A stretch of 64,000 nt of DNA. Source: Paraphysomonas bandaiensis. Lineage: Eukaryota > Protista > Chrysophyceae. Under the pieces are notes generated by a model that was not told the origin of the DNA, did not search any database, and worked only from the letters and a program-made list of their open reading frames with translations. The stretch covers positions 62,001 to 126,000 of the forward strand of contig CBFFRP010000090.1 in assembly GCA_965644295.1 (NCBI GenBank), in the 5' to 3' direction. The translations under genes and the position numbers were made by a program. Positions 8,194 through 55,001 of this stretch are shown here, piece after piece. Position 1 is the first letter of the stretch; each line of letters opens with the position of its first letter.

Positions 8194-11100
8194 TTATAAA
8201 TTAAACAGCGAAGTCACTGCACTCTGAACATGATTTCTAACAACATTTCTAACGTCTATTTCGGAGTCAACAGTATGGTTTGCTAAATTTACACGGTATA
8301 TACGAACTCCATGTGCCTCCGATAAGTACCTATCACGAACTGTATCAAATAAATTACTCCTAGGGTACTGGTGCGTTGGGCCGTCGATTTCGATGTTTAT
8401 CACTCTGCCATCGCCACTGGTGAGGAGTATATCTGCCTCGAACCCGTGAATGTATATGTTACTAGTTACTTTCGCATCCAACCCACAGTCATTTACAAAT
8501 GATTGAATTTCACGCAAAAACAGATCCTGGGTATTTGACTGACTATGCTTGACTTGACAGACACCACGAGTTTCTTTGATAGTAAGTGTGCTTACTTCCC
8601 TCAGAATCTCCACCAACCTACATTTTACATTCTCAGGTATATCTTTCACACCATGTAGAAACAAGTCGACAGATCGCCATAAATCCATCGCCCCTTCATA
8701 TCCCCACAAGGACTGACCAGTGACCTCACATGTGACGTATTCCTGTACATTGGAGGGTACTTTTTCCAGTGCAGAAGACAAAAACATACTAACCGCTACA
8801 TGCTGCGCTGACATGCCCTGAAGGCCATATAGACATTGACTAAGCGTCTGTGGAGGTAGGAGTGACAAGTCAGTTCGAATTCTTGAAGCCAGTAAACCCA
8901 ACACGTCCCTAACCTCCGGGTAGTGACTGGACATGCGCTGCAGACCATACACAGCGATCCCTATCGCTTGAGAACCCAACGGCTCATCACATGACTGCAT
9001 CTTACTGCTTAGAGCTTGCAATACAACACGGACCTCTGGATATTCGCTACTCATACCCTGAAGTCCATAAAATGCTGCACCAATCTCTGCAGGACGAAGA
9101 GCATCACTACATTGAAATATCTTAGGAGCAAGTGCAACTAGCATGTCGCGTACTTCAGAGTGACTGCTACACATGCCTTGCATACCATACAGCGCACTAC
9201 TAATATGCTGCGATTCCAGTGCACCAGGGCTAGCAGATACGTGCCCTACGAGCACACTCAGTAGTGTTCGCACTTCAGGATGATAACTAGTAAACTTTTG
9301 CATACCATACAGGGCATTCCCGACACTACAAGATGATATACGCTCCGTACACTGTCGTATCTTGTCACTCAATACAAGCACTATTTCCCTAACCTCCGGG
9401 TAACAACTAGACATACGCCTCAAGCCATAAAGCGCACTTCCAACACCCTGCTCATCAAGACCCTCACTGGACTGTTTAATCCTCTTGCTTAGACAACGAA
9501 GAAGATCCCTGACCTCCTCGTGGGTAGCAGACATACTCTGTAAACCGTACACAGCGATTCCCATCTCCTGTGGGCTCATATTGCCAGAAACCCTATCGAT
9601 ATGAGGAGTCAAATGAGATATCAGAATCCGAACTTCCTCGTAGTCACTTGACATTCCCTGGAGCCCATAGAGTGCATTCGATACAGCCTGAGGAGTGAGC
9701 TCTTGTTGGAAAGACTTGATCTTTTCCCCAAGTGATCTCACCAATTCACGGACCTCTGTGTGGTCACTGGTCATGGACTGCAGTCCATACAGGGCATTGC
9801 CAATCTCTTGAGGCCGAAGGGAATCACCACTATCATGCATACATCCACATAAAGCAGATAATAACTCTCGGACTTCTTTATACTGAGAGGACATTCTACG
9901 CATACCATACAATGCGTTTCCGATCGCTTGAGACTTCAGTGGTTCAGGAGATGCGGCTATTTTCGTTGTGAGTGCTGTCAGTAACTCCCGCACTTCAGGA
10001 TAATCAGTCGACATATTCTGAAGTCCGTATATCGCACTACCAATTTCCAGAGAACTCAATGCTTGATTCCCAAGCAGTATAAGTCTCGTCAATATAGGTA
10101 TAACCTGCCTAACTTCTGTGTGGTCACTGGTCATGGACTGCAGTCCATACAGGGCATTGCCAATCTCTTGAGGCCGAAGGGAATCACCACTATCATGCAT
10201 ACATCCACATAAAGCAGATAATAACTCTCGGACTTCTTTATACTGAGAGGACATTCTACGCATACCATACAATGCGTTTCCGATCGCCTGAGAGTTCAGT
10301 GGTTCAGGAGATGCGGCTATTTTTGTTGTGAGTGCTGTCAGTAACTCCCGCACTTCAGGATAATCAGTCGACATATTCTGAAGTCCGTATAAAGCATTAC
10401 CAAGTATCTGTGAATCTATTATTGCCTTAGATGAATAAATACGACTAGTTAGTGCAGATATTAGTTCCCGGACTTCACTGTGTTCGCAAGACATCTTTCG
10501 CATACCATATAGCACATTTCCTATGGCCTGGGCACTCAGTGGTTCGGTTGAAGATGATATATTTTTCGTGAGCGCAGATAAGAGAGAAACAACTTCTGAA
10601 TGACTAGAAGACATGTTGCGGAGGCCAAATAGAGCACCAGATATTTCCAGATCGTTCAGTGGTTCACTACACGACAAAATCTTTGTAGACAAGGAATGTG
10701 CTAATGCACAGACTTCTGCATGTTCACTTGACATGCCACGCAGTCCATACAATGCGCTAGCAAGAGAATACCGCTCCATAACAGCATCGCTCTCAATAAC
10801 ACATTGAGTCAAGATAAAAACCAATTGACGGACCTCAGAAGAATACGAAGACATATTTTTCAATCCATACAGAGAACACCCTATATCTTGACCACTAAAA
10901 TTACCCGAAACCGAAGAAAATTTCGAGGACAATATGGCCAACAAAGAACGCACCTCAGAAGATTCACAAGACATGTTCTGAAATCCAAACAAAGACTTTG
11001 ATAAAGTATACGAATGAAATAAATCATCACAATCGGATATCAGGGGTGTTAGTGCAGCCAGCATATCGCGTACTTCAGAGTGACTGCTACACATGCCTTG

Positions 11101-12492
11101 CATACCATACAGGGCATTTCCGACACTGCGTGATGATATACGCTCCGTACACTGTCGTATCTTGTCACTCAATACAAGCACTATTTCTCTAACCTCCGGG
11201 TAACAACTAGACATACGCCTCAAGCCATAAAGCGCACTTCCAACACCCTGACCATCAAGACCCTCACTGGACTGTTTAATCCTCTTGCTTAGACAACGAA
11301 GAAGATCCCTGACCTCCTCGTGGGTAGCAGACATACTCTGTAAGCCATACATAGCGTTACTCATCTCCTGTGGACTCATATTGCCAGAAACCCTATCGAT
11401 ATGAGGAGTCAAATGAGATATCAAAATCCGAACTTCCTCGTAGTCACTTGACATTCCCTGGAGCCCATAGAGTGCATTCGATACAGCCTGAGGAGTGAGC
11501 TCTTGTTGGAAAGACTTGATCTTTTCCCCAAGTGATCTCACCAATTCACGGACCTCTGTGTGGTCACTGGTCATGGACTGCAGTCCATACAGAGCATTGC
11601 CAATCTCTTGAGGCCGAAGGGAATCACCACTATCATGCATACATCCACATAAAGCAGATAATAACTCTCGGACTTCTTTATACTGAGAGGACATTCTACG
11701 CATACCATACAATGCGTTTCCGATCGCCTGAGAGTTCAGTGGTTCAGGAGATGCGGCTATTTTTGTTGTGAGTGCTGTCAGTAACTCCCGCACTTCAGGA
11801 TAATCAGTCGACATATTCTGAAGTCCGTATAGTGCGCTTCCTATATTTCTGGCTGGTAATACATCTACACACCCTCTGACGTTTTGATTTATAGAAGATA
11901 TGAGACTACGCACTTCGCTATGTCGACTAGACATTCCTCGCAAACCGTACAATCCGTTACCCACTGCCTGTGCACTGAAAGCATCGTCACACTGTGATAT
12001 CCTATACGAAAAAACACTGAGAAATTTTCTAACATCCTCATATTCGGAAGACATTCCCTTCAATGAGTATAATATCGTCCCAATGTTCCGTTCATTGAGT
12101 TTAGTCGGTATACGTTCCATATGAATAGTCAATGCTCGCAACAACTCCATTGCACCGGAACTACGACTAGATAAGACACGCAGAGCATTAAGAGACTTAT
12201 ACACATCTCCTGCAGCCATTTTCTCGCAAGTCATCAGCTCCTTTGCGATACTGCAGAGATTCAACGCAGTGATGTGTGTGTTCCTGTACCCAAAGCCGTG
12301 TAAAACTGTAGCCAGGGCGGGTATGTCGCTATTCTCTATCAGCTCCTTCAGCTGACCACCAACAGGCAATCTCTTCTTGGTATTTGGAGGACGTCGTCGG
12401 GATGTGACAGTGGAAGCACTGCTACATAGTCGTCTGGTCAGAGAGATCGAATAGGCTCTGCATGGAGACCGCCTTAATATGATTGATAGCAT
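8194..12492 (-). CDS. Helical-repeat/RAP-domain protein A: 28 x 40-aa OPR-like repeats plus RAP domain, putatively mitochondrial
   Basis: Intronless 1432-aa ORF (ATG at 12492; the ORF-track start 12495 is GTG). Arg/Ser-rich, acid-free N-terminus. Repeat consensus LxxQxIGNALYGLQxMSSxxxEVRxLLxxLxxKI. C-terminal HGFEADILL...INIEIDGPTHQY...RDRYL...GVRIYRV is a RAP-type signature. Confidence 0.85.
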   Translation of the reverse strand: MLSIILRRSPCRAYSISLTRRLCSSASTVTSRRRPPNTKKRLPVGGQLKELIENSDIPALATVLHGFGYRNTHITALNLCSIAKELMTCEKMAAGDVYKSLNALRVLSSRSSGAMELLRALTIHMERIPTKLNERNIGTILYSLKGMSSEYEDVRKFLSVFSYRISQCDDAFSAQAVGNGLYGLRGMSSRHSEVRSLISSINQNVRGCVDVLPARNIGSALYGLQNMSTDYPEVRELLTALTTKIAASPEPLNSQAIGNALYGMRRMSSQYKEVRELLSALCGCMHDSGDSLRPQEIGNALYGLQSMTSDHTEVRELVRSLGEKIKSFQQELTPQAVSNALYGLQGMSSDYEEVRILISHLTPHIDRVSGNMSPQEMSNAMYGLQSMSATHEEVRDLLRCLSKRIKQSSEGLDGQGVGSALYGLRRMSSCYPEVREIVLVLSDKIRQCTERISSRSVGNALYGMQGMCSSHSEVRDMLAALTPLISDCDDLFHSYTLSKSLFGFQNMSCESSEVRSLLAILSSKFSSVSGNFSGQDIGCSLYGLKNMSSYSSEVRQLVFILTQCVIESDAVMERYSLASALYGLRGMSSEHAEVCALAHSLSTKILSCSEPLNDLEISGALFGLRNMSSSHSEVVSLLSALTKNISSSTEPLSAQAIGNVLYGMRKMSCEHSEVRELISALTSRIYSSKAIIDSQILGNALYGLQNMSTDYPEVRELLTALTTKIAASPEPLNSQAIGNALYGMRRMSSQYKEVRELLSALCGCMHDSGDSLRPQEIGNALYGLQSMTSDHTEVRQVIPILTRLILLGNQALSSLEIGSAIYGLQNMSTDYPEVRELLTALTTKIAASPEPLKSQAIGNALYGMRRMSSQYKEVRELLSALCGCMHDSGDSLRPQEIGNALYGLQSMTSDHTEVRELVRSLGEKIKSFQQELTPQAVSNALYGLQGMSSDYEEVRILISHLTPHIDRVSGNMSPQEMGIAVYGLQSMSATHEEVRDLLRCLSKRIKQSSEGLDEQGVGSALYGLRRMSSCYPEVREIVLVLSDKIRQCTERISSCSVGNALYGMQKFTSYHPEVRTLLSVLVGHVSASPGALESQHISSALYGMQGMCSSHSEVRDMLVALAPKIFQCSDALRPAEIGAAFYGLQGMSSEYPEVRVVLQALSSKMQSCDEPLGSQAIGIAVYGLQRMSSHYPEVRDVLGLLASRIRTDLSLLPPQTLSQCLYGLQGMSAQHVAVSMFLSSALEKVPSNVQEYVTCEVTGQSLWGYEGAMDLWRSVDLFLHGVKDIPENVKCRLVEILREVSTLTIKETRGVCQVKHSQSNTQDLFLREIQSFVNDCGLDAKVTSNIYIHGFEADILLTSGDGRVINIEIDGPTHQYPRSNLFDTVRDRYLSEAHGVRIYRVNLANHTVDSEIDVRNVVRNHVQSAVTSLFNL
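8740..12099 (-). repeat. Coding tandem array of 28 x 120-bp units with near-identical duplicated blocks
   Basis: Exact 40-aa periodicity. Identical blocks recur at offsets of 360, 1440 and 1800 bp (e.g. near-identical shadow ORFs at 9732 and 11532). Confidence 0.95.
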
Positions 12493-13039
12493 CACAGTTA
12501 CTTATGAAACCCTCGCATCATATCATCATATTCATATACTTATATTCATGTGCATTGATTGGATATCGCCCTCTCACTTCGTCTTCATTGTCCGTGAAGT
12601 TTAAATAGTCTCATATACAGCAGTACATATGCAGATGTACTCTTAGCGTATATGTGTACTATCGTATAGATGTGCAGGCTATATGCGGCTATCATCCTCC
12701 ATCAAATTATTTTTTAGGGTGGACTGAATACCCTCGTAGTACACTATACTATGTACTGCTAGACTCATATGTAGAGTAGTACGGTATGTATGCGGTGGTA
12801 CTGTACAGTGAGCGGGTTGCTGACACACACTGGAGCTGCTCTTAATAGAGCGACTGGTTATATATATACCACACCAGCTCGCTATGCATATTGAGGCTAT
12901 CTACATCATGTCTTGATATGCAGTAGAGTATATATCTCAATGATTCCATCGCACTGGTGACTCATACATACATATCATGAGAGACGACTGTCACTGGTAG
13001 ACGACATATAGACATAGATATATACTGACCACTGGCTAT
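12493..13039. promoter_or_regulatory. Putative bidirectional promoter of the repeat/RAP gene pair
   Basis: 547-bp spacer between divergent ATGs, rich in alternating purine-pyrimidine tracts (tatatg, gtgtac, catac) like the other divergent spacers in the window. Confidence 0.5.
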
Positions 13040-15526
13040 ATGTGGCGCATTACAGTCAGATTGAAACGGACGACTCTGCCGACGAGACGAATTAATAGTT
13101 CAATCAAGAAGGTTGCCAAACAAAAGAATACTAGAAGCATCCCTCCTGCTATAGGGAACATACTTGATGACATTGTCGGAAAGAAAGACTTGTCTGCCAT
13201 TGCTTCATTGCTTTATTCTTGTGGAAAGAGTAAATTTGCACTTCCAAACCATGTTCTATACAGCATTGCAAGAGAAGTGCATAACTGTGCCCCAGTTACC
13301 AGTGTCAGTGATATTGACAAGTCGTTTAACGCCCTCCGTGTCTTATCCAGTCGTAGTCCCGGTGCAATGGAGTTGTTGCGAGCATTGAGCATTCGTCTTG
13401 AGCGGGTGTCAACCAAACTCACACAACGGAACATTGGGTCGATATTATTTTCATTGAAGGGTATGTCTTCCGAATATGAGGATGTTAGAAAGCTTCTTAG
13501 TATACTATCCGAGAAAATATATCTCTGTGAAGATAATTTTAGTGCACAAGCAGTGGGTAACGGGTTGTACGGTTTGCGAGGAATGTCTTGTAGTCATCCG
13601 GAGGTCAGGAAGTTACTAACAGCGCTTACTACCAGAGTAGCCGCATCATCTGAGCCACTTAACTCTCAGGCGATCGGAAACGCATTGTATGGCATGCGCA
13701 GAATGTCTTCAGAGTATAAAGAAGTCCGTGAACTGTTGTCTGTTCTTACTATAGGTATCGATGCTAGTACAGATATCATGCGAACACAGGAAATCGGAAA
13801 CGCGATATATGGCCTTCAAGGAATGTCAAGCGAGGAAAATGAAGTCCGTAGGCTACTGGCAGCAATAAAACGAAAACTTGATAACTGCAATGGATTATTT
13901 CGGCCTCAAGAGATTGGCAATGCTCTGTATGGACTGCAGTCCATGACCAGTGACCACACAGAGGTCCGTGAATTGGTGAGATCACTTGGGGAAAAGATCA
14001 AGTCTTTCCAACAAGAGCTCACTCCTCAGGCTGTATCGAATGCACTCTATGGGCTCCAGGGAATGTCAAGTGACTACGAGGAAGTTCGGATTTTGATATC
14101 TCATTTGACTCCTCATATCGATAGGGTTTCTGGCAATATGAGTCCACAGGAGATGAGTAACGCTATGTATGGCTTACAGAGTATGTCTGCTACCCACGAG
14201 GAGGTCAGGGATCTTCTTCGTTGTCTAAGCAAGAGGATTAAACAGTCCAGTGAGGGTCTTGATGGTCAGGGTGTTGGAAGTGCGCTTTATGGCTTGAGGC
14301 GTATGTCTAGTTGTTACCCGGAGGTTAGGGAAATAGTGCTTGTATTGAGTGACAAGATACGACAGTGTACGGAGCGTATATCGTCACGCAGTGTCGGGAA
14401 TGCCCTGTATGGTATGCAGAAGTTTACTAGTTATCATCCTGAAGTGCGAACACTACTGAGTGTGCTCGTAGGGCACGTATCTGCTAGCCCTGGTGCACTG
14501 GAATCGCAGCATATTAGTAGTGCGCTGTATGGTATGCAAGGCATGTGTAGCAGTCACTCTGAAGTACGCGACATGCTAGTTGCACTTATTCCCAAGATAT
14601 TTCAATGTAGTGATACTCTTCGTCCTGCAGAGATTGGTGCAGCATTTTATGGACTTCAGGGTATGAGTAGCGAATATCCAGAGGTCCGTGTTGTATTGCA
14701 AGCTCTAAGCAGTAAGATGCAGTCATGTGATGAGCCGTTGGGTTCTCAAGCGATAGGGATCGCTGTGTATGGTCTGCAGCGCATGTCCAGTCACTACCCG
14801 GAGGTTAGGGACGTGTTGGGTTTACTGGCTTCAAGAATTCGAACTGACTTGTCACTCCTACCTCCACAGACGCTTAGTCAATGTCTATATGGCCTTCAGG
14901 GCATGTCAGCGCAGCATGTAGCGGTTAGTATGTTTTTGTCTTCTGCACTGGAAAAAGTACCCTCCAATGTACAGGAATACGTCACATGTGAGGTCACTGG
15001 TCAGTCCTTGTGGGGATATGAAGGGGCGATGGATTTATGGCGATCTGTCGACTTGTTTCTACATGGTGTGAAAGATATACCTGAGAATGTAAAATGTAGG
15101 TTGGTGGAGATTCTGAGGGAAGTAAGCACACTTACTATCAAAGAAACTCGTGGTGTCTGTCAAGTCAAGCATAGTCAGTCGAATACCCAGGATCTGTTTT
15201 TGCGTGAAATTCAATCATTTGTAAATGACTGTGGGTTGGATGCGAAAGTAACTAGTAACATATACATTCACGGGTTCGAGGCAGATATACTCCTCACCAG
15301 TGGCGATGGCAGAGTGATAAACATCGAAATCGACGGCCCAACGCACCAGTACCCTAGGAGTAATTTATTTGATACAGTTCGTGATAGGTACTTATCGGAG
15401 GCACATGGAGTTCGTATATACCGTGTAAATTTGGCGAAGATATTTTATGGCTCCAACGTAGACGTTAGAAATTCTGTTAGAGATAAGATTCGGAGACTGT
15501 GTATTGAACCATTTTATAATTCATAG
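13040..15526 (+). CDS. Helical-repeat/RAP-domain protein B: 13 x 40-aa repeats (13418-14977) plus RAP domain, putatively mitochondrial
   Basis: Intronless 828-aa ORF. Basic presequence-like N-terminus (MWRITVRLKRTTLPTRR). Same repeat consensus and RAP core (about 15254-15432) as protein A. Confidence 0.85.
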   Translation: MWRITVRLKRTTLPTRRINSSIKKVAKQKNTRSIPPAIGNILDDIVGKKDLSAIASLLYSCGKSKFALPNHVLYSIAREVHNCAPVTSVSDIDKSFNALRVLSSRSPGAMELLRALSIRLERVSTKLTQRNIGSILFSLKGMSSEYEDVRKLLSILSEKIYLCEDNFSAQAVGNGLYGLRGMSCSHPEVRKLLTALTTRVAASSEPLNSQAIGNALYGMRRMSSEYKEVRELLSVLTIGIDASTDIMRTQEIGNAIYGLQGMSSEENEVRRLLAAIKRKLDNCNGLFRPQEIGNALYGLQSMTSDHTEVRELVRSLGEKIKSFQQELTPQAVSNALYGLQGMSSDYEEVRILISHLTPHIDRVSGNMSPQEMSNAMYGLQSMSATHEEVRDLLRCLSKRIKQSSEGLDGQGVGSALYGLRRMSSCYPEVREIVLVLSDKIRQCTERISSRSVGNALYGMQKFTSYHPEVRTLLSVLVGHVSASPGALESQHISSALYGMQGMCSSHSEVRDMLVALIPKIFQCSDTLRPAEIGAAFYGLQGMSSEYPEVRVVLQALSSKMQSCDEPLGSQAIGIAVYGLQRMSSHYPEVRDVLGLLASRIRTDLSLLPPQTLSQCLYGLQGMSAQHVAVSMFLSSALEKVPSNVQEYVTCEVTGQSLWGYEGAMDLWRSVDLFLHGVKDIPENVKCRLVEILREVSTLTIKETRGVCQVKHSQSNTQDLFLREIQSFVNDCGLDAKVTSNIYIHGFEADILLTSGDGRVINIEIDGPTHQYPRSNLFDTVRDRYLSEAHGVRIYRVNLAKIFYGSNVDVRNSVRDKIRRLCIEPFYNS

Positions 15527-21419: not shown

Positions 21420-24400
21420 ATGTCAGTTAAAGTTACAAGTTACGACTCAACCGACTCGGATTCAACAACCGAAAAACAGAAAGACTCAATGCCAAAGTTC
21501 GACGCGAAGAACTTCTCCAAGTGGCAGAAGAAGTGCCGTGCATGGTTTTACAGAAAGCCTAAGATCGTTTATACTCTACAGAACGATCACCCAATTGAGC
21601 CTGAAGCAGGAGAAAACTCAGATGACGAGGACTACCAGTATCGACTCGAACAGTATCAGGATGCGAAACGATATTATGATGAAGGTAATAACTACCAATG
21701 GTCAGTCATTGCAAGCTCTATCATTGGTCAGGATGAAGAGGCTGAGGGGATTTTGGAGAACGTCCCCGATGGAGACGGAAAAACCGCCTGGACGGACTTG
21801 CTCAACCACTTCAAAGAAAAAACGACTAACGATGTAATCACCGATCTGATTGGCCAGTTTCAGAGCATAAAAATCAAAAAAGGTCAGTCGATAATCAACT
21901 TTCTTGACGCTGTCGAAAAGCTCCGAAACAAGCTGATTAATTATGGTCATCGGATAAGTGACCAAGATCTCATATCACGCATTCGACAAGGCCTGGTATC
22001 CAAAGAAAATATGACGTATCGAGAACTGGCAATCAACCTGCAGATGCACCCTATCGATGACTACAAAACACTCATACGCAGACTACGCGGATTAGGAAGC
22101 TCATCTGTAGGAATGCTCTTGTCAAGCAACGAAGAAACAAAAACCGACAGTATTCAGCTTGCAGCCTCAAAACCCCCATTTTTCAAAAGTAAAGTGAATT
22201 CCAAGCGCAAAAAGGGGACATCTTTCAGAAACCGTTCCAATAAACCGAAACATGACAAGAGAACTGACAAGGACATTAAGTGTTTCCGATGCGATGGAAA
22301 AGGACACATCGCTTCAGAATGCAAACACTCATGGGAAAGGATCCAACAAATGAAGAGTTCCTCTGGAAACAAATCAACCAGTAGGAAATTCAAAAAAGTT
22401 AGATTCCAGACCCACCAGAGCACTGAAAACGACGAATCCGACCAGTTTGCAGATTATGAAGACAGTGGTCCACTACAACAGAAAGGACGAGACTTCGGAG
22501 GAGTCGGATATCCAACAAACGACGAAACGAACTTCGTTTTTGATCAAGAAGCCGGAATGGGAACCCTTGATTCTGGCTGCACAGTCTCCATCACACCTGA
22601 AGCCGGATACATCACCAATTATGAGGAATGCCTCACCGACATTCAAACAGCTAAGTCAGGATCGACTATGACCTCTTCAGGACATGGAAGACTTGGTATT
22701 ATCCCCAAGTGCAAGCACGTGGACCATGCTTCGAGGACACTCGTGTCCATCAGCCAATTAGATGACCTAGGGTATAAAATCTTGTTCGGAAACCAATCAG
22801 TTGAGATATATAAAGATGAAATACTGCTATCAAAGGGTAAGAGAGTTGGAGGCCTATATGAAATTCCATTAACAGACCTCGGTACTCCTATTGACGAATC
22901 CCACCTTGCTTCAACTGCTTCAGGCCCACTCGCAACTCTAGCACATAAGAGATTGGCACATTCTTCAATTGGACTCATACAGAAAGCTGTACAGTCAAAA
23001 TTAGTAACGGGTATTAAGTTAACGAAGTCGGAGATGAATGCTACTTCTTTACCGGGTGGCCTATGTGATGGTTGTGCTAGTGGTAAATCTCATCGCCGAA
23101 AACATAGACACGCTATCAGACAAATGCTGCTCAAGCGTGTAAGAAGAGCAAATGAGCTGGGGGAGCTAGTAGTAGCCGATTTTTCTGGACCCCATGCACC
23201 AGAGGCAATCATTACTGGCAACCGTTACATACTCGGGATGACAGATGTAGCTTCCAGACACCAATGGGACTCCTACGGACCAACGAGAGATGAAGATTTC
23301 GTCATCCAATCCATCCAGAAAGTTGTCATGTATCTACATAGTAAAGGCAAACGACTACAACATTATCATGCGGATGGGGGGAAGGAGCTGGTATCAAGAA
23401 AAGTTCTAGAGTATCTTCAATCAATAGGGGCTACATGGACTTTCAACTCCCCGTATACCCCCGAGGATAACCCATTCCAAGAGCGATCATGGCGGACAAC
23501 TAAAGAACGAGCACTCAGCAGCCTTATCGACTCTGGACTCCCACCGAATTTCTGGGAACAAGCCTCAAAGGCGACAATACACATCAAGAACAGGTTACCG
23601 TGTCAAACAGCTAAAGGATTTATGTCTCCACTTCAGTTTATCGAAAACGAAATACCAGACTTGAGTTATGCCAGAATATGGGGATGTAAATGCTTTGTGA
23701 ATATCGATTCCAGTCTCCGAAAGAACAATTGGGACAGACATAGCTGGCCTGGGTATTTTATGGGCTATCGAGAGGATGGTCCTGGATATATAGTCTTTGT
23801 TCCCGCATTAAGAGATTTTGTTATATCAGGACATGTATTTTTCAACGAATGTGTTCCACCAGCGGATAAGAGATATTTTAAAGAGATAAATGAGATCTTC
23901 AGAGAGAATGAGACCTCCAGGACAGTAGAAAGTTTCAAATATCTCATAGGTCTAGCTCATGTAGATCCAGACGATGGATTAACATATGTAACGACTCAAA
24001 TAAAGCTCAGAAAAGGATTAATCGCAGCGTATCGTGGTCTAGTGGACGACAGCGGTGACAAGACACGACTCATCCAGCTCGACGACCCCATTCATGCTGC
24101 AGACGTCGAAAAGTACACTGAAGAATACATAGAACTCAAAGCAGTTGGTCTCAAATGTAATACTTCTCGATCTAAAACCCCAATACATAAATCCAGCAAA
24201 TCAGATCGAGACCCCGATACAGTTAATGGATCTCCAGCGCCAGCCGCTACTTCCAGGGGGAGTGGCGTGAATCGAAGACATCATGATGCCGCGCAGGAGA
24301 GAATCAGCAGCCATCGGTGTGAACCTACCCACTCCGATGCAAAGATAGCGAAGACTCGCCCTTCGAAACAATTCAATGGGAATCTAGTGCCGAATCCGGC

Positions 24401-26414
24401 ACCACACGGTCAAGTGGATCGTGTGCGTCAGCGTGTGGCCAAACGCTGCAACAAGCCTGCTGATTCATCGGGAGATTGGGAAAATCAGGGTACACCTGAA
24501 GGGCCAAGTAAGGTCCGTGCTACAGCAAAACAACAATTTTTAGCTGGTAGAAAGAGTGTTCTCCGAAGCAGGAGAATGGCCAGGAAACGGGTAATCGTAA
24601 ATATACATAAACTTGGTGATGGTGTATATACATGTGATGTAAATGCTAAACATGTAGTAAATCATATGGCACATGACACACAATGTATATCAAAATTACA
24701 TACTAACAATATTGATATTGTTATGCATGCTATCAGTAATTGCGATGACATTGACGAGCTAACTGATACACCAAAGAGTGTTCAAGATGCTATTTCAGGT
24801 AAATATAAACAGCAGTGGATCGATGCTATCAACAGAGAAATATCCACTCTTCAGAGGAAAGGGTGCTGGAGATACACTGCGTTACCACCTGGAGCAAGAG
24901 CCATAAAGGGGAAACTCATATTCAAAATAAAAAGAAAACAGAATGATATCAAATTCAAGGCTCGACTAGTCGCACAGGGTTTTACTCAAATCCAAGGCAT
25001 CGATTACAATGATACATACAGCCCCGTCGCGAAGGCTACATCCCTACGTACAATTATTGCCCTTTCGACTATTATGAAACTCAAATTGCACCAAATCGAT
25101 TTCACAACTGCGTACATCAATGCTGACCTCGAAGAGGACATATACATGTATCCCCCTCCTGGCATGGACGTCCCTGACGGAAAAGTCCTCAAACTGATGA
25201 AAAGCATCTATGGTCTAAAGCAAGCAGGTCTTAACTGGTATAAGTGCTGTACAAATTTTATGCTAGATATGGGTTTCACCAGACTAATATCTGACCCGTG
25301 TATATTCAAAAAGCAGATTAATGGCAGGATTATGCTAATAGCCATGTATGTGGACGATATTATTATAGCATCTACATCCGACACTGATATCCAACAATTC
25401 AAAGATCATTTATCCAAAAAGTTCGAAATTACGGATCTCGGACTCCTAGATTATTACTTGGGCATCTCCATTCATCAAGATTTTGACAAAAATATCACGA
25501 CTCTCAGTCAGGAGCAGTATGTCAGAAAACTGCTGGACAAATTCAACATGTCCAACAGTAAACCCATGTCAACACCTATGTTACTGTCTTTCAACTATGA
25601 TTTACATGAATACAATCATCTTTCAGAGTCAAATCAAAGTTATGTTCAGAATTTCCCCTACAAGGAGCTCATAGGTTCCCTGATGTATCTAGCTGTATGC
25701 ACTCGACCGGATATCGCCTACGCAGTCAATACTCTTGCCAGATTTTCTGATATGCCTAATCTAACTACCTGTAATGCTGCGTTACATGTTCTTAGGTATC
25801 TCAAAGGCACTGCTAAGCAAGGATTGATATATTCTGGATCCCACATAACATTGTCAGGATACTGCGATAGCGATTGGGCACGATGTCACCTCACTCGACG
25901 GTCCACTACAGCTTTTACATTCTTCATAGGTAATTGTCTTATATCATGGCAATCTCGATTACAGACAACTGTGGCATTGTCATCTACTGAAGCTGAGTAT
26001 ATGGCTCTATCGTCAGCAGCTCAGGAAGCATTATGGCTACGCTCTTTATTATCAGAAATTGGTTTCAAACTTCCATTCTCAACAACTATTTGGTGCGATA
26101 ATAAAGGGGCAGTCCAATTATGCTACAATCCTACTCATCATCGTCGTACGAAACATATTGCGATACGGTATCATTTCATTCGAGAAAATATTGCCGAAAA
26201 CCAATTGACTGTTGACCATATTCCCACCACGTCAATGTTAGCCGATCTTCTCACGAAACCACTAGGAACAACTAATTTTCTTCAATTGCGAACTACATTG
26301 ATGGGGGGAGCTGGGTTCGACATCCCATCCAGCAGCAACAGAAAGCGATCAACAACCTCAGAGACACCTAAATCACAATTAACAAGCCACAAGCGACCTA
26401 GGTGGCTAGTTTGA
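21420..26414 (+). CDS. Copia Gag-Pol polyprotein (Gag, zinc knuckle, protease, integrase, RT, RNase H)
   Basis: CFRCDGKGHIASEC; LDSGCT; HKRLAH...CDGC; integrase D..D..E (ADFSGP / HADGGKE / NPFQER); KARLVAQGF...YVDD; GYCDSDWA...STEAEY. Integrase precedes RT (Copia order). Confidence 0.97.
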   Translation: MSVKVTSYDSTDSDSTTEKQKDSMPKFDAKNFSKWQKKCRAWFYRKPKIVYTLQNDHPIEPEAGENSDDEDYQYRLEQYQDAKRYYDEGNNYQWSVIASSIIGQDEEAEGILENVPDGDGKTAWTDLLNHFKEKTTNDVITDLIGQFQSIKIKKGQSIINFLDAVEKLRNKLINYGHRISDQDLISRIRQGLVSKENMTYRELAINLQMHPIDDYKTLIRRLRGLGSSSVGMLLSSNEETKTDSIQLAASKPPFFKSKVNSKRKKGTSFRNRSNKPKHDKRTDKDIKCFRCDGKGHIASECKHSWERIQQMKSSSGNKSTSRKFKKVRFQTHQSTENDESDQFADYEDSGPLQQKGRDFGGVGYPTNDETNFVFDQEAGMGTLDSGCTVSITPEAGYITNYEECLTDIQTAKSGSTMTSSGHGRLGIIPKCKHVDHASRTLVSISQLDDLGYKILFGNQSVEIYKDEILLSKGKRVGGLYEIPLTDLGTPIDESHLASTASGPLATLAHKRLAHSSIGLIQKAVQSKLVTGIKLTKSEMNATSLPGGLCDGCASGKSHRRKHRHAIRQMLLKRVRRANELGELVVADFSGPHAPEAIITGNRYILGMTDVASRHQWDSYGPTRDEDFVIQSIQKVVMYLHSKGKRLQHYHADGGKELVSRKVLEYLQSIGATWTFNSPYTPEDNPFQERSWRTTKERALSSLIDSGLPPNFWEQASKATIHIKNRLPCQTAKGFMSPLQFIENEIPDLSYARIWGCKCFVNIDSSLRKNNWDRHSWPGYFMGYREDGPGYIVFVPALRDFVISGHVFFNECVPPADKRYFKEINEIFRENETSRTVESFKYLIGLAHVDPDDGLTYVTTQIKLRKGLIAAYRGLVDDSGDKTRLIQLDDPIHAADVEKYTEEYIELKAVGLKCNTSRSKTPIHKSSKSDRDPDTVNGSPAPAATSRGSGVNRRHHDAAQERISSHRCEPTHSDAKIAKTRPSKQFNGNLVPNPAPHGQVDRVRQRVAKRCNKPADSSGDWENQGTPEGPSKVRATAKQQFLAGRKSVLRSRRMARKRVIVNIHKLGDGVYTCDVNAKHVVNHMAHDTQCISKLHTNNIDIVMHAISNCDDIDELTDTPKSVQDAISGKYKQQWIDAINREISTLQRKGCWRYTALPPGARAIKGKLIFKIKRKQNDIKFKARLVAQGFTQIQGIDYNDTYSPVAKATSLRTIIALSTIMKLKLHQIDFTTAYINADLEEDIYMYPPPGMDVPDGKVLKLMKSIYGLKQAGLNWYKCCTNFMLDMGFTRLISDPCIFKKQINGRIMLIAMYVDDIIIASTSDTDIQQFKDHLSKKFEITDLGLLDYYLGISIHQDFDKNITTLSQEQYVRKLLDKFNMSNSKPMSTPMLLSFNYDLHEYNHLSESNQSYVQNFPYKELIGSLMYLAVCTRPDIAYAVNTLARFSDMPNLTTCNAALHVLRYLKGTAKQGLIYSGSHITLSGYCDSDWARCHLTRRSTTAFTFFIGNCLISWQSRLQTTVALSSTEAEYMALSSAAQEALWLRSLLSEIGFKLPFSTTIWCDNKGAVQLCYNPTHHRRTKHIAIRYHFIRENIAENQLTVDHIPTTSMLADLLTKPLGTTNFLQLRTTLMGGAGFDIPSSSNRKRSTTSETPKSQLTSHKRPRWLV

Positions 26415-49650: not shown

Positions 49651-52600
49651 ATGATGTTTACTGACTCTCCTTCATGTGAGGAAGGGGTGATCTCAGTGAA
49701 AGAATGGTTCTCTAGCTCTCCATTAGAAGAGTTTGAGCTGCATGAGGGGGATATGAGTATGGAGGAATACTGGGCTCAAATGACACTCTCTTATGCAGAA
49801 AATGAGAATGGAAGTTTAGATGAGGATGATGATGAGGAGGATGAGGACAGCAGTGATAATGAAATAGATTTTGGTGATGAGTTTGTTATGCAGCCTCACA
49901 ATGGCGCCATTCTTAGTTTAGCTACTGGTATAAGCGACGATGAGGACGAGGAAGAGGAGGAAGAAACGAGCTCACGTGATGACAAGTCTGATTATTGTGA
50001 TGATAATAGCAGTGGTCATGAGTATGATGATGACGGTGGACATGAAGGGTTGTTCGACAAGTATATGACTAGTCCGAGACCTACGGATGCCTCAGTCAAC
50101 AAATCTACTCGTGATGAGCAAAATTTCTTTGGTCAAGGGATAGAAAATGAAGATAGCGACGAGGATGGGGTGACTGCCGACCTTTTAGGTGTATTGGGTG
50201 ATGGTGCACAGTCACAACATGACCAAACGAGTACTCCAATGTCGGAGCATAGTCATAAATCATCTCCTCAAAAGTCCCTCTCAATTGCGCAGAATAATGG
50301 TAATAATAGTAAATCGAATCCATATGAAGGCCAAAAACGCCCTGTTGCACAATCGAGAGGAAAGAATGGGGTTACAGAACGCAAGAGTGAACGTAAGGCA
50401 CTGGTAAAGAGACACAGAGCTGCTCATGACGCGGAGAAGAAACACAAAGTACGGCGACACGTTTACTCATACAACGTCATCATATGTTTGTGTATAGATG
50501 TGGCTTCTTGAGATGGTTGAGAAGAAACGGCAAGAGGAAGCTGAGTTAATGGACAAAGTGCGGAAGGCAGAACTGAAGCGAAAGAAGTTCAAGGAGGTGC
50601 GTCTTGTTTCATCGAGTTGTGTATGTAATTATTCGCATACACTATAAGTATATGAACTTGAAGTACAATGTACCTTCATTGACGCTATCCATGTAGGCTC
50701 TACTTGAAAGGGCTCGTGCCAAGCAGCAGGCGCAGCAGGAGGTAGACAATCAGGCACATGAACAGGAAGTTTCTAAACCAACGAAGAAGGTAATGAAAGT
50801 AATCAGATTTATTCCCCAGTATTTCATGTATAAATGTCAAAATCACTTATCGTACTACACTATTTCTGAGTAGTTTTATTTGTGTGCAATGTTGGTTGCG
50901 GTGTACGACCTCTGGCGTTGATACTTCACGCGGTAGTCTCATATATTGTACAGAAAGTTAAAAGACAACCTGCAGTCGATAGCAGCTGCGCAGTGCCAGG
51001 CAAAAAGAAAGATGATGGAGGTGTTGAGGATGGAGATGAGGAGGCCCTTTTGAAGGAGGAGGCGGAAGCTAGAAAGCAGGTGATGCTGCATTCGTACCTC
51101 GGAGTTTATATGAGTGATGTCAACTGGTACTCAGATGGAGGAAGCCATCAGGATACGGAAGAAGTTTAAGCGACAACAGAAGAAGATTCTGCAATCTCTT
51201 AAGCAGAAAAAAATAGAGGAAGAGAAGAAGGTGCGTTTTCCGTCATGTAATGTTGCCAGTATTTGCTTTTGTGTTGCTTTATCATTCGAATCTTAGATAA
51301 TGGAAGCTATGGAGAACGATGAGCGGGTTAAGGAACGATTGAGGAAGAGGTGGGGTTGGATAATTAACCTAGCTGTGTGACTTCTACTTATATCACACAA
51401 ATGACTTGTGACGTTAGAAACTAATATTTATGCCACAGAAACGAAAAACTGCTTCGAAAACGAGAGGTTAAAGTTGGCACAAAGCCAGGGGGAGAGGGAG
51501 AAGAAGGACAAGACTGGGCAGCAGGTGTACATGAAGTGTGTTTTAGTAACGACTTGGTATCTTCAAGTATATGCGCATTCTGCAGTGAATAGTAATAGGA
51601 GTATATAGTTAGGGATGATAGTGTTTTTGGATGCTGAAGCCATAGCGGATGCCATAGTGGATGTTGTTATTATTACCACGTATTGATAGAAATTGTTGAT
51701 TGTTTCAGGAAGTGGTGTGTCTGCTGTCCGCGCCTCTCGATCTCAAGGAGACCCAGCTGTCCCTATTACTGCGACGGAGTCTGAGTCATCGCACCCAGAG
51801 CGGGTAGGAAAAGTTACCCGTCGTTCTCGCAGTGTCAGTGCCGCAGATCGCTCTGCTGGTGCTACCGAAAGCAGCTATGGGGAAGAATCAGCTAAGCCGC
51901 GCAAACCCCGTAAAATGGCTTCCTCGTCCATGGCTGATGAAATATGCCGAGAGGGCGCGCAAGAAGATGATGGAAAGGATGAGAATGCCGATGAGGTAGC
52001 TGCTAAGGAGCGACGTAAGTTGGAAGCTAAGAGACGTCAAGAGAAGGTGGCCGCCCAATTGAAAGCCCTATCAGAGCAACGCCAAATGGCTGCCCTTAAG
52101 GCAAAAAGGCAAGAGGATAGAGCTAAGAAACGCGCCGATCTTCTTTCTGCCCGTGTTCAAATGGAGTTTTCCGAACGGAAGCTTATGGCGAAAGAAGATA
52201 AGTATGCGAATCCTGGCTGCCTGGGGGAAATGATGCTAACTAAACCAGAGGCTACTGATGCCGAGGCTCCGAAAAAGAAAGTCACCCCGGAAATGGCTGA
52301 AGCAATGTTTAACCGACTTCAGGCACGCCAGGCCAAGTCTAAGGAATGTGCAGACGCAAGAGCGAACTCTATGCCACAAGCACGTGATTTTGCAGACTGG
52401 AAGAAAAAAAATGCCGTACCCTCCGATGCAAAGGTGTTCTGTATGACGGGTTGGTACCCCTGTGTAAAGTCAGCTCTCCTTCAACGAGGGTGGTACTTTA
52501 ACCCTGATCATACCTCTCCTTACTGTGACCTGAAATGGACATTGCGCTCATCGGATGTAACAGCTGAAACTCTTCAACCGTGGCAGCTAACCAATCACTT

Positions 52601-55001
52601 CATGAAGAATATCGCACTAACAACAAAGATTGGTCTCCTGAAAAGCCTCCAACAGCTGGTGTGGATAGCTGATGCTACGGCGAATGATATAATCCCTCGC
52701 GGTTATGATTTGACTAATGCCATTGAAATTCAGGAGTATATCGATGACTTCCGTATTCAGCAGGCGGAATGTATCTTGAAAAAGCTCTATCACACTGCAA
52801 CGGGGCTGGATAAGCCTAAATCTTTTAAGAAACATGTCCCAATGACGCCACGGACTTCTCCCAGGGAGGCAGAGGGCGGAAATGGGAGTCAAACTCCCCA
52901 AAGAAAGGATGAAGATGTGGAAATTATTGCGGAAGTTCCCGAGCCGATTGTCGATGTAAATAAGTTACTTGTCAATCGAGCGGTGTTTTCGGCTTGTTGT
53001 GCAATTCTGGAGCGGTTTTTGAAACCATACTATTCTGATTGTATTGACAACGAACCGCAGTACGACGACAACTATGCTGTGAGCGCCTTGGAATGGGAGT
53101 TGATTAGCGAATACGACATTTCATCGACCCACATACTTCCTGAGAATGCGCCAGAGCCGATCGATGATTTTATACAGGATAAGAACGATGGCACGGATCC
53201 TGGCTCTCCGTTGAACACAGCTAAGCAAAGACAAGCCGTAGCACTGGCTAATAGGAACAGTAGACTTCAAAAGAAGCACGAAATGAAGGCAAGACAAGAG
53301 GCGTCCAATCATATCAAGGAACTTGTGCCTCTAGGTGAAGATGGACTCCGCACGGTGCATGAATTACTTAGTAAATGCAATATTATCAATTATAACCAGA
53401 CGAGCTTGAATGGGAAGGGAGCGAGCGCAATGAATATGTGGATTGTAAAACCTGCTGCCAAGAGTAGGGGGAGAGGCATTACAACTTTCTGTGATCTGAA
53501 AAAGCTTCTGGATTATGTGGAGCTAGGGCGAAACGGGAAGTCTTGCCTGACTTCATCGCACTGGATTGTGCAAAAATATATGGAAAATTCGATGATAATT
53601 GCTAATAGAAAGTTCGACTTACGCCAGTGGGTACTAGTATACGACTGGAACCCACTCACGATATACTTCTTCGATGAGTTTTACGCAAGGTTCAGCGTAG
53701 ACGAGTACTCTACGAGCGAGGAAACGATGGATAATGCTCATGTGCACCTCGTTAATAATTCTATCGGTAAGACTAGCGAAAAATACCACGAGAAGTGCGT
53801 AACAGATAATGGGGAGGTACTCGATGGGTTCATGCTGTCACATGAGCAGTTTTGCTCCTATCTTGAGTTCAAGTCAGGCGACCCTGGTATAGTATCGAAT
53901 CTCAAAAGTCGCATGAAAGATATGGCTGTGTGGAGCTTAATGTGTGGTTCTGATGCTATTGAGCACCGCAAAAATTCCTGGGAGCTCTATGGGTTCGATT
54001 TTATGGTGGACGACGAGTTTAATCCTTGGTTAATTGAGATAAATTCATCCCCTGCCTGTGACTACAGTACGAAGGTGACGGAGCGGTATGTCCAGAAAGC
54101 TCTTGTTGAGTTGCTGTCAGTTGTTTTAGACGTTAGGGAGTGGGAAAATACACCCAAAAAAGTAAGGGGAGAGAAGCCTGATACTGGTGGGTGGGAGTGT
54201 ATATATACTGGTCCGTACCTGGAGACCCCTGCCTCCTCTTTTGGAACCGATATGTCTGTTAAGGGAGAGGCAATGAAGGTCCCTAGAAAGAAAGCACCAA
54301 TGTACACTACTACTCTGTTCAGTGGAAAACAACTGGGGTCTTCTCCTCCTAGAGAAAAGAAGGAAGCCGGATATTCCAAGGCCGTGGAATCGAAGAAATC
54401 CATCCCTTCTGAGTGCACTAGTAAGAGAGCCGCGTCTACGAGCAATACGTTTGTGAAATATGACCCGAATGAGTGTAGTGATTCTGAGGAGGAAAGCGGC
54501 AGCCCTGGGCCTGTTAAACTGAAGCCTTCTCCGGAGCGTGCACGAAACTCTACTGCTAGTAAATCTGGCAAGCGCCCAGAGCATCTTCCTCGCGCCTCTG
54601 AGAAATCTCTAAGTGGTAGTAGAAATGCAGAGAGAGGCGACACCGTACACAGCTCTATTTTGCCTCCCAGTCAAGTTCGTGCTGCTGCTCTTTCTACCAT
54701 CGGAGGTGAGACAGAAGTCGAGCCTGTACGCTCTGTAAATAGTACCCGTGGGTCCTTTGTAAGCAGCCGTGGCACTGACAGTGGAACGGTTGCAATGCTA
54801 AACGATAGCGACAGTGACGATGAGGGACAGCCGGTTGGGGCAGCTAAAATAGCTCCAGAGACTGCTACAGTTGCTGCGGTCACTCAGCCGAAGAAAATGT
54901 CTATCAAAAGTCGCGCTAAATCGGGTGTGCCGTCAGATAGCTGTTCAAATAATGCCAGTGGTGCACCGATTCCAATAAAAACTCTGACTCTCGATTTCTA
55001 A
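49651..55001 (+). CDS. TTLL3: Tubulin glycylase of the TTLL3/TTLL8 subfamily, multi-exon, with long acidic and coiled-coil N-terminus
   Basis: LLQRGW, QLTNHF...LTTKIGL, WIVKPAAKSRGRGI, VQKYME...KFDLRQWVLV.DWNPLTIYFF, ELYGFDFMVD...WLIEINSSP. Linkage of the 5' exons (49651 to ~51550) is inferred from splice sites. Confidence 0.85.

Follow-up and report, generated by a model that had tools for sequence, protein, structure and literature searches.

Genes A and B of Paraphysomonas bandaiensis, the subject of this study, are neighbours on contig CBFFRP010000090.1, within a 64,000-nucleotide stretch (the window, to which all coordinates refer). The list of open reading frames (ORFs) shows them as two long intronless frames in a head-to-head layout, with gene A on the minus strand and gene B on the plus strand. 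The layout predicted for their products is a basic presequence followed by 13 to 28 helical hairpins of 40 residues in exact register, a helical linker and a C-terminal PD-(D/E)xK domain. The start listed for gene A is a GTG directly preceding an ATG, so the probable start is 12492. The 544-bp region between the two start codons is presumably a shared bidirectional promoter.

The 40-residue repeat array

The anchor motif [LMVIF][YFW]G[LMFY] occurs 28 times in gene A and 13 times in gene B, at a spacing of 40 residues throughout save for the last spacing, which is 41. A hidden Markov model (HMM) built from these units found 29 of them in gene A and 13 in gene B, in one unbroken 40-residue register. 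The ORF list, the anchor motifs and the repeat HMM agree on an intronless pair with 28 and 13 exact 40-residue units, which is what an earlier reading of the DNA letters alone (the original prediction) had described. That reading had also listed 15 discrete residue types at five positions of the unit; all 15 were found, and the 41 in-register units display 24 types in total at those positions. In the numbering used here, register position 1 is gene B residue 124 + 40n, and the positions formerly called 3-5 and 7-8 become register positions 6-8 and 10-11. In the AlphaFold model of gene B each unit consists of a short helix A (positions 6-14, 9 residues) and a longer helix B (positions 24-39, 16 residues), joined by a conserved 9-residue loop, G-L-Q-x-M-S-S-x-x.

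Next, the spacing was followed through 28 full-length paralogues, extracted from the 62.5-Mb assembly (669 contigs) for family comparisons, and through 229 homologues of other organisms. Seven paralogues, which have 12-29 units and are ∼ 40% identical to B, keep 40 residues at every spacing; several others show one or two deviations, and the remainder have spacings of 38-45 residues with inserts. Among the 229 homologues the spacing is 40 residues in 69% of cases, 39-41 in 84% and 37 in 0.3%, and the longest exact 40-residue run outside this genome is 14 units. Because distant paralogues and foreign homologues keep the 40-residue spacing, recent duplication alone does not account for the regularity; the period is a property of the whole family.

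The coding sequence of gene B is represented in a polyA marine metatranscriptome (X13), whose contigs cover 13793-15495 at an identity of at least 99%. In a second run, X8, which is probably an RNA run (the kind of library was guessed), one contig covers the 5' part of gene A (12000-12594). The X8 contigs extend over the 5' regions of both genes and leave 12620-12743 free, while DNA runs cover everything, and a gap between two covered 5' regions fits two divergent transcripts. As evidence of expression these data carry the caveat that polyA and RNA libraries may contain DNA. The features of the two genes are collected in Table 1.

Table 1. Features of genes A and B and of the region between them (window coordinates).
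Feature	Position	Strand	Description	Basis
Gene A	8194..12495	-	Intronless ORF, 1433 aa	ORF list
Gene A presequence-like segment	12361..12495	-	About residues 1-45, basic, Ser/Arg-rich	Composition
Gene A extra degenerate unit	residues 90-129	-	In register, upstream of array	Repeat HMM
Gene A repeat array	8749..12108	-	28 units A00-A27, residues 130-1249, exact 40-aa register	Anchor motifs and repeat HMM
Gene A capping unit and helical linker	8536..8748	-	Register off by one residue; leads to nuclease module	Identity with gene B
Gene A C-terminal PD-(D/E)xK core	8194..8535	-	Vsr/DUF559/RAP-like	Sub-cut-off Pfam scores, residue mapping
Divergent intergenic region	12496..13039		544 bp between start codons	Covered by DNA-run contigs
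Gene B	13040..15526	+	Intronless ORF, 828 aa	ORF list
Gene B presequence-like N-terminus	13040..13144	+	Residues 1-34 disordered in model, pLDDT <50	Composition; model
Gene B N-terminal degenerate helical hairpins	13145..13408	+	Residues 36-123, extending the solenoid	AlphaFold secondary structure
Gene B repeat array	13409..14968	+	13 units B00-B12, residues 124-643, exact 40-aa register	Anchor motifs, repeat HMM, AlphaFold
Gene B capping unit and two long linker helices	14969..15181	+		Aligned to helical part of FAST-RAP module
Gene B C-terminal nuclease module	15182..15526	+	Contains D749, E763, D765, H769, R781, D782	Conservation and fold matches
Inverted-repeat arm	13899..15438		Partner of 8279-9818	99% complementary

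Fold of the solenoid and of the C-terminal module

The AlphaFold model of gene B, calculated with 31 homologues, has a predicted local distance difference test score (pLDDT) of 88.9 and a predicted TM-score of 0.85, and its array, at pLDDT 92-98, is built of regular helix pairs. The best VIA-align matches of this model are chains of the Toxoplasma mitoribosome, 9i05_Xi (Z 16.6, 343 residues) and 9g6k_LJ (Z 15.1), both of which span the last repeats and the tail; the chains neighbouring them were deposited as RAP domain-containing proteins. Further matches are chain 7pkt_Q of the Chlamydomonas mitoribosomal large subunit (Z 14.3, 430 residues, root mean square deviation 5.4), a protein that probably belongs to the OPR class, and Polytomella ASA2 (6rd4_2, Z 13.6). 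Foldseek returned the same neighbours and trypanosome RESC subunits, with 9i05_Xl at E 1.8e-6 and, lower down, PPR10 and designer PPR-RNA complexes at E ∼ 1e-4. The language-model neighbours were RAP, FAST_1 and RESC6 clusters (scores 0.94-0.95), and the best 50 solenoid matches included no TALE or mTERF structure. Together, the structural comparisons support a model in which both proteins are OPR/HPR-like α-solenoids followed by a RAP-like PD-(D/E)xK module.

Sequence searches were far less productive. In Pfam, neither the complete proteins nor their isolated tails, nor the 32 or 50 homologues scanned, gave a meaningful match to RAP, FAST, PPR, TPR or any other repeat family; scattered matches (Hemerythrin, DUF6094, HD and others) were rejected as noise of repeat composition, with no significant single stretch. 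Nothing significant was returned by searches of PDB sequences with gene B or its tail, and PDB profile searches gave marginal matches, which included DUF559 chains and were enriched for mitoribosomal RAP proteins, RESC8, ASA2 and mL104. The top PDB sequence-profile match was the computationally designed helical repeat protein DHR14 (E 1.3e-4, three units aligned), probably through convergence of idealised helical-hairpin sequence patterns.

Taken at face value, DHR14 would suit an armadillo-like scaffold for protein-protein contacts, one with a degenerate, inactive nuclease fold and no reading of nucleic acid. The net charge of the arrays, -1 in gene B and -16 in gene A, is likewise neutral to negative, and importin-α and armadillo repeats do match the gene B model, at only ∼ Z 8. 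Such a scaffold is nevertheless very improbable, as Z 8 is far below the Z 14-17 of the organellar RNA binders, the candidate active-site residues described below are kept in distant homologues, and a presequence with a RAP-type architecture is typical of organellar RNA factors.

An unbiased structural search with the tail gave I-Bth0305I (3r3p, Z 11.8), a DUF559 protein (3hrl, Z 10.7) and Vsr (1cw0, Z 10.6), with restriction enzymes also among the best fold matches. The 174-residue C-terminal model aligned with the Toxoplasma RAP protein 9g6k_LJ over 152 residues (Z 10.6) and with the FAST1-FAST2-RAP module of human FASTKD4 (9gek_A) over 150 residues (Z 8.6), and the top shape match in the ESM Atlas was a RAP (PF08373) cluster (TM 0.67, 162 residues). 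Both 3r3p and Vsr are modelling templates of FASTK RAP domains, and the equivalent Asp is essential in FASTKD4 (PMC5449608).

The RAP domain named in the original prediction is therefore borne out by the fold, by the C-terminal place after the repeats and by the conserved Asp, but not by the sequence, which is closer to DUF559 and MTES_1575. The Pfam RAP model (PF08373) did not match the isolated A and B tails even at E ≤ 10, and among 50 family tails, at E ≤ 0.01, 24 matched DUF559 (best 3e-8), 19 matched MTES_1575 and none matched RAP. The tail of gene A reached E = 1e-4 with MTES_1575 and E = 0.086 with DUF559, both under the cut-offs; measured against the curated values, the A and B tails scored 21-23 bits with MTES_1575 (PF18741, cut-off 38.2) and 13 bits with DUF559 (PF04480, cut-off 20.6). 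Given the lack of a RAP sequence match, ‘RAP-like’ is used here as a statement on fold and architecture and not on Pfam membership.

Within the module, gene B D749 is invariant in the homologues, F746, N761, E763, D765 and H769 are conserved in at least 90% of them, and R781 and D782 are invariant among full-length homologues. Residue mapping gives D1355, E1369, D1371 and H1375 as the candidate active-site residues of gene A. The earlier suggestion of a nuclease-like effector is consistent with this conservation, in that the putative catalytic positions D749, E763, D765 and H769 are those retained.

The kinship of the tail invites a further explanation, namely that the proteins are mitochondrial DNA-targeting enzymes in which the array reads DNA, like mTERF or TALE proteins, and the Vsr/DUF559-type domain nicks or cuts for repair, recombination or homing. 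The sequence grouping of the tails agrees with this, as do the best fold matches, which are DNA enzymes (a homing endonuclease, Vsr, restriction enzymes), and the strict periodicity recalls TALE arrays. We consider it improbable, since TALE and mTERF are missing from the best 50 solenoid matches, yet RNA-binding OPR, HPR, RESC and PPR proteins are present. Moreover, the same templates serve the RAP domains of proven RNA-processing proteins (PMC5449608), and the whole tail, including the linker helices, aligns with the modules of RAP proteins.

The gene family, its recombination and its host

The assembly contains 89 matching stretches at ∼ 30 or more loci, nearly all of them stop-free open frames, and an exhaustive search of public data gave 2117 cluster representatives at E ≤ 1e-3 and 494 at E ≤ 1e-30. 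The few named homologues, from Chromulina, Ochromonadaceae sp. CCMP2298, Mallomonas and a Karlodinium transcriptome, are all termed ‘hypothetical’ or ‘uncharacterized’. Whether the family had already been described was a question left by the original prediction; with no functional name on any homologue, it is unannotated. The nuclease module is present in 12 of the 28 full-length paralogues, and the other 16 (for example L014, L011, L020, L035 and L046) consist of a repeat array without a detectable C-terminal nuclease module. In many long foreign homologues (1250-1450 residues; P0001, P0002, P0010, P0014, P0018 and P0021) the module lies mid-protein, in one example at residues 920-1099 of 1442, followed by at least 300 further residues. 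Two or three members of the family sit together on each of contigs C424, C426 and C434, an arrangement reminiscent of the NCL gene clusters of Chlamydomonas, and the copies on C298 (∼ 10-12 kb) and C473 (∼ 2-4 kb) have identical scores, which suggests a duplicated contig end.

Genes A and B are closely entangled at the DNA level. Their 41 in-register units fall into 26 clusters at ≥ 90% DNA identity, unrelated units being only 50-65% identical. Units B04-B13 are 93-100% identical to A19-A28 and B04-B07 are 94-100% identical to A04-A07; A03, A15 and A18 are mutual copies, and direct repeats inside gene A reach 91-96%. An inverted repeat of 1540 nucleotides (99% identity; Table 1) is common to the two genes, the 3' halves of which are thus nearly identical. 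Short-read contigs of independent DNA runs end exactly at the repeat borders, and word depth steps at ∼ 1:3:2 from unique to triplicated to duplicated sequence. These depths agree with the assembly, although depth of this kind is not a copy number.

The duplicated blocks differ at 12 non-synonymous and 11 synonymous codons, both kinds clustered at register positions 1-17, and one patch in A21 repeats the G-I-A-V-Y-G string of A26. The possibility that these differences mark selected code residues was rejected, because synonymous and non-synonymous changes share the same patches; we read them as gene conversion and not as targeted selection.

A 945-nucleotide contig of the polyA metatranscriptome skips exactly 120 nucleotides at window positions 14404-14525. 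The head of B08 is joined to the tail of B09 within the shared A-L-Y-G-M-Q codons, and the units from B10 to the tail follow. This order of units is present in neither gene A nor gene B, so natural populations seem to carry one-repeat-shorter alleles; unit A08 of gene A is a hybrid of the same kind. On the best explanation, genes A and B arose by recent duplication within a large nuclear gene family and still recombine.

These family data also bear on the idea that the proteins serve in the structure or assembly of the mitoribosome, or as scaffolds of mitochondrial ribonucleoproteins, and bind rRNA or protein through charge and shape with neither modular sequence reading nor catalysis. The top structural matches are all subunits of mitoribosomes or of the RESC complex, and the nuclease module is lacking in 16 paralogues. 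In Chlamydomonas, large-subunit proteins grouped as ‘ASA2-like/OPR’ hold single-stranded rRNA 3' ends in an inner groove reported to be rich in lysine and arginine; binding is said to depend mainly on charge, and some of the OPR proteins bind through convex faces or inserts (PMC8660880). We nonetheless hold a role of this kind to be unlikely. Recombination between A and B and changes of repeat number within the species would be unusual in a core component of the ribosome, and strictly periodic arrays of 23-29 units far exceed the ribosomal examples in length. The candidate catalytic residues also show strong conservation, and the arrays carry no net positive charge.

With regard to location, the first 35 residues contain 8 Lys or Arg and no acidic residue in gene A, where the first acidic residue is at position 51 and a hydrophobic signal-peptide core is absent, and 11 Lys or Arg and no acidic residue in gene B. 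Over the first 35 residues of the 28 paralogues there are 155 Lys or Arg and 21 Asp or Glu; at least 24 of these N-termini are basic and acid-free by composition, many begin M-L-R, and none has a signal-peptide-like hydrophobic core. The composition of the N-termini supports the presequence-like character first ascribed to them.

Genes for psbA and light-harvesting proteins were not found in the 62.5-Mb assembly, although absence from an assembly is not proof, and cox1 is present on its last contig. DNA of this organism was detected in marine plankton samples. In the simplest reading, the host is a heterotrophic stramenopile-like protist whose mitochondria are its sole genome-bearing organelle. 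Since genes for photosystems and antennae were not found, the target is probably RNA of the mitochondrion, where the A and B proteins would be located.

Elsewhere in the window, a Ty1/copia-type retrotransposon lies ∼ 6 kb from gene B as a 1664-residue ORF (21420-26414, plus strand) with integrase core, retroviral SH3-like and RVT_2 reverse-transcriptase domains. A 1102-residue ORF (51693-55001, plus strand) contains a tubulin-tyrosine ligase family domain (E 9e-58), which fits a flagellated eukaryote.

Possible RNA recognition and relation to known families

The explanation that we favour, and consider likely, is that A and B are mitochondrion-targeted α-solenoids of the OPR/HPR/ASA2 kind with a Vsr/DUF559-type domain, and that they act on mitochondrial RNA. 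By analogy with solved structures of OPR proteins from Chlamydomonas and RAP/HPR proteins from Toxoplasma, a stretch of single-stranded mitochondrial RNA would be bound in the inner groove of the superhelix. The exposed face of the short helix A, at positions 7, 8, 11 and 14 (consensus Q, x, N, Y), would add to specificity. The C-terminal domain, a putative PD-(D/E)xK domain of the fold on which RAP domains are modelled, would cut nearby or hold an RNA end, and the outcome would be transcript-specific processing, stabilisation or decay.

Several observations weigh against this scheme or against parts of it. The Pfam RAP, FAST_1, PPR and other repeat models fail to match genes A and B, and the sequence neighbours of the tail (DUF559, MTES_1575, Vsr and I-Bth0305I) are DNA nucleases. 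The arrays are not basic. With 16 of the 28 paralogues devoid of the module, nuclease action is not general to the family. As to the idea of a code, the discrete residue types that had been offered as a hint of TALE-like recognition are largely copies of the same recently duplicated units, the 41 units representing 26 DNA clusters; helix-A positions 7 and 11 occur in 100 combinations among 240 repeats genome-wide, and the lining of the groove by positions 7, 8 and 11 would follow from helical periodicity alone.

Family-wide entropies show that the freely variable positions are the exposed helix-B positions 28, 31, 34, 35, 38 and 39 and the inter-unit loop 1-3. Positions 7 and 11 of helix A have a restricted alphabet, mainly Q (43%) and N (43%), and are the second most strongly covarying pair (z 6.7). 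In a wheel projection of helix A, positions 7 (Q), 10 (G), 11 (N) and 14 (Y) should cluster on one face, opposite the buried positions 9, 12 and 13. The 7/11 pattern might thus resemble that of specificity residues, and it equally resembles that of neighbours on one helix face. Q-N makes up 22% of the 7/11 pairs, no small set of residue pairs dominates beyond it, and positions 7, 8 and 11 form 171 triples among the 240 repeats; a small discrete code was rejected on these counts of pairs and triples.

That the arrays read RNA at one base per repeat is accordingly doubtful in our estimation, and we are just as hesitant about the fuller proposal that they read single-stranded RNA base by base via positions 7, 8 and 11, with stacking by Tyr14 and with the Vsr-type domain as an active endonuclease. 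The programmable reader with a solvable code that was originally proposed is thus hypothetical, and some of what was adduced for it stems from duplication. If the fuller proposal is true, the family would be a natural, protein-only, reprogrammable RNA cutter, and its code could be worked out from the 30 or more paralogues in each genome together with thousands of homologues.

In organelles, helical-repeat RNA binders are the principal specific regulators of gene expression, and PPR proteins are now design tools. We know of no recognition code for OPR, HPR or RAP proteins, whose repeats are too degenerate to align well. The present family offers rigid repeats for the inference of a code (as many as 29 units with an exact 40-residue period and about ten scaffold positions that are fixed), and many paralogues per genome combined with rigid repeats are the kind of data behind the inference of the PPR code.

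Among known families, the OPR proteins share the fold and the paired helices of the unit, and the period of 40 residues falls within their range of 38-40 (PMC8635915). The PPPEW motif is lacking: the equivalent positions in 293 repeats of this genome have P in 20%, E in 73% and V in 93%, with neither a Trp nor a run of prolines. One review quotes an OPR unit that starts P-Q-D-V-S-N-V-C-W-S-L, and the consensus here, S-Q-A-I-G-N-A-L-Y-G-L, resembles the OPR pattern Q-x-V-S-N-x-x-W-S-L. Moreover, 19 residues separate the helix-A Gln from the PEW or PEV position in both (Q5-W24 in OPR, Q7-V26 here). By its sequence, then, the 40-residue unit looks like a relative of the OPR that has gained two residues and carries x-x-P-E-V in place of PPPEW. 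Of the divergent OPR-like subfamily that had been predicted, the solenoid fold, the helix-A motif and the 19-residue spacing stand, and the defining motif is absent.

The apicomplexan HPR/RAP proteins (mitoribosomal and RNA-stabilising factors of Toxoplasma and Plasmodium) are likewise mitochondrial, have the same repeat-plus-RAP layout and give the best structural matches. Their units, however, are degenerate, 37 residues long and without a fixed motif, whereas those described here have 40 residues, with about ten strongly conserved positions; 37-residue spacings are absent from A, B and the seven exactly periodic paralogues, and the sequence-profile similarity is marginal (E 0.075-0.13). Because both PPPEW and the 37-residue unit are lacking, we place the family in neither OPR nor HPR. 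FASTK proteins have a comparable architecture of the mitochondrial RNA-processing type, a module with which the tail aligns and an equivalent of the conserved Asp. They differ in having few, highly degenerate repeats, and no Pfam FAST_1, FAST_2 or RAP match was found in A, B or 31 homologues.

The closest sequence family of the tail is that of the DUF559/Vsr-like endonucleases, with which it shares the motifs F-E-x-D, E-x-D-G-x-x-H and R-D-x-Y-L. These are DNA enzymes of bacteria or phages that stand alone or are joined to helicases, and none has a 40-residue solenoid or a presequence. PPR and TALE proteins also form long, regular helical-repeat arrays, and the covarying helix-A pair behaves like the code positions of PPR. 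However, there is no sequence relationship to either and no TALE structure among the matches; the 35-residue PPR profile is missing from every Pfam scan, the period here being 40 residues, and a code is hypothetical here.

Among the closest systems are also the Chlamydomonas OPR-RAP proteins, especially those of the NCL (NCC-like) group. Common to both are an organellar presequence, a tandem array of helical hairpins, a C-terminal putative PD-(D/E)xK domain of RAP type, the helix-A motif Q-x-[IV]-[GSA]-N-x-x-[YW]-[GSA]-L, and young, clustered paralogues that are quick to diversify. The Chlamydomonas proteins have 7-12 units of a degenerate 38-residue period with PPPEW, as opposed to 13-29 units of strictly 40 residues with x-E-V in place of the Trp-containing motif and the conserved G-L-Q-x-M-S-S loop. 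In Pfam the tail here scores with DUF559/MTES_1575 and not with RAP, and the target, chloroplast RNA in Chlamydomonas, is presumed to be mitochondrial in this apparently non-photosynthetic stramenopile-like host.

Overall, the family is best seen as a variant, with 40-residue units, within the OPR/HPR-RAP class of organellar RNA factors, and in this organism it is probably mitochondrial. An HMM census counted 0-6 RAP proteins in heterokonts (PMC8190603), and the stramenopile RAP entry is blank in the table of a review (PMC9181182). The present family fills this gap, as this genome alone has at least 30 loci that the RAP models of those surveys missed.

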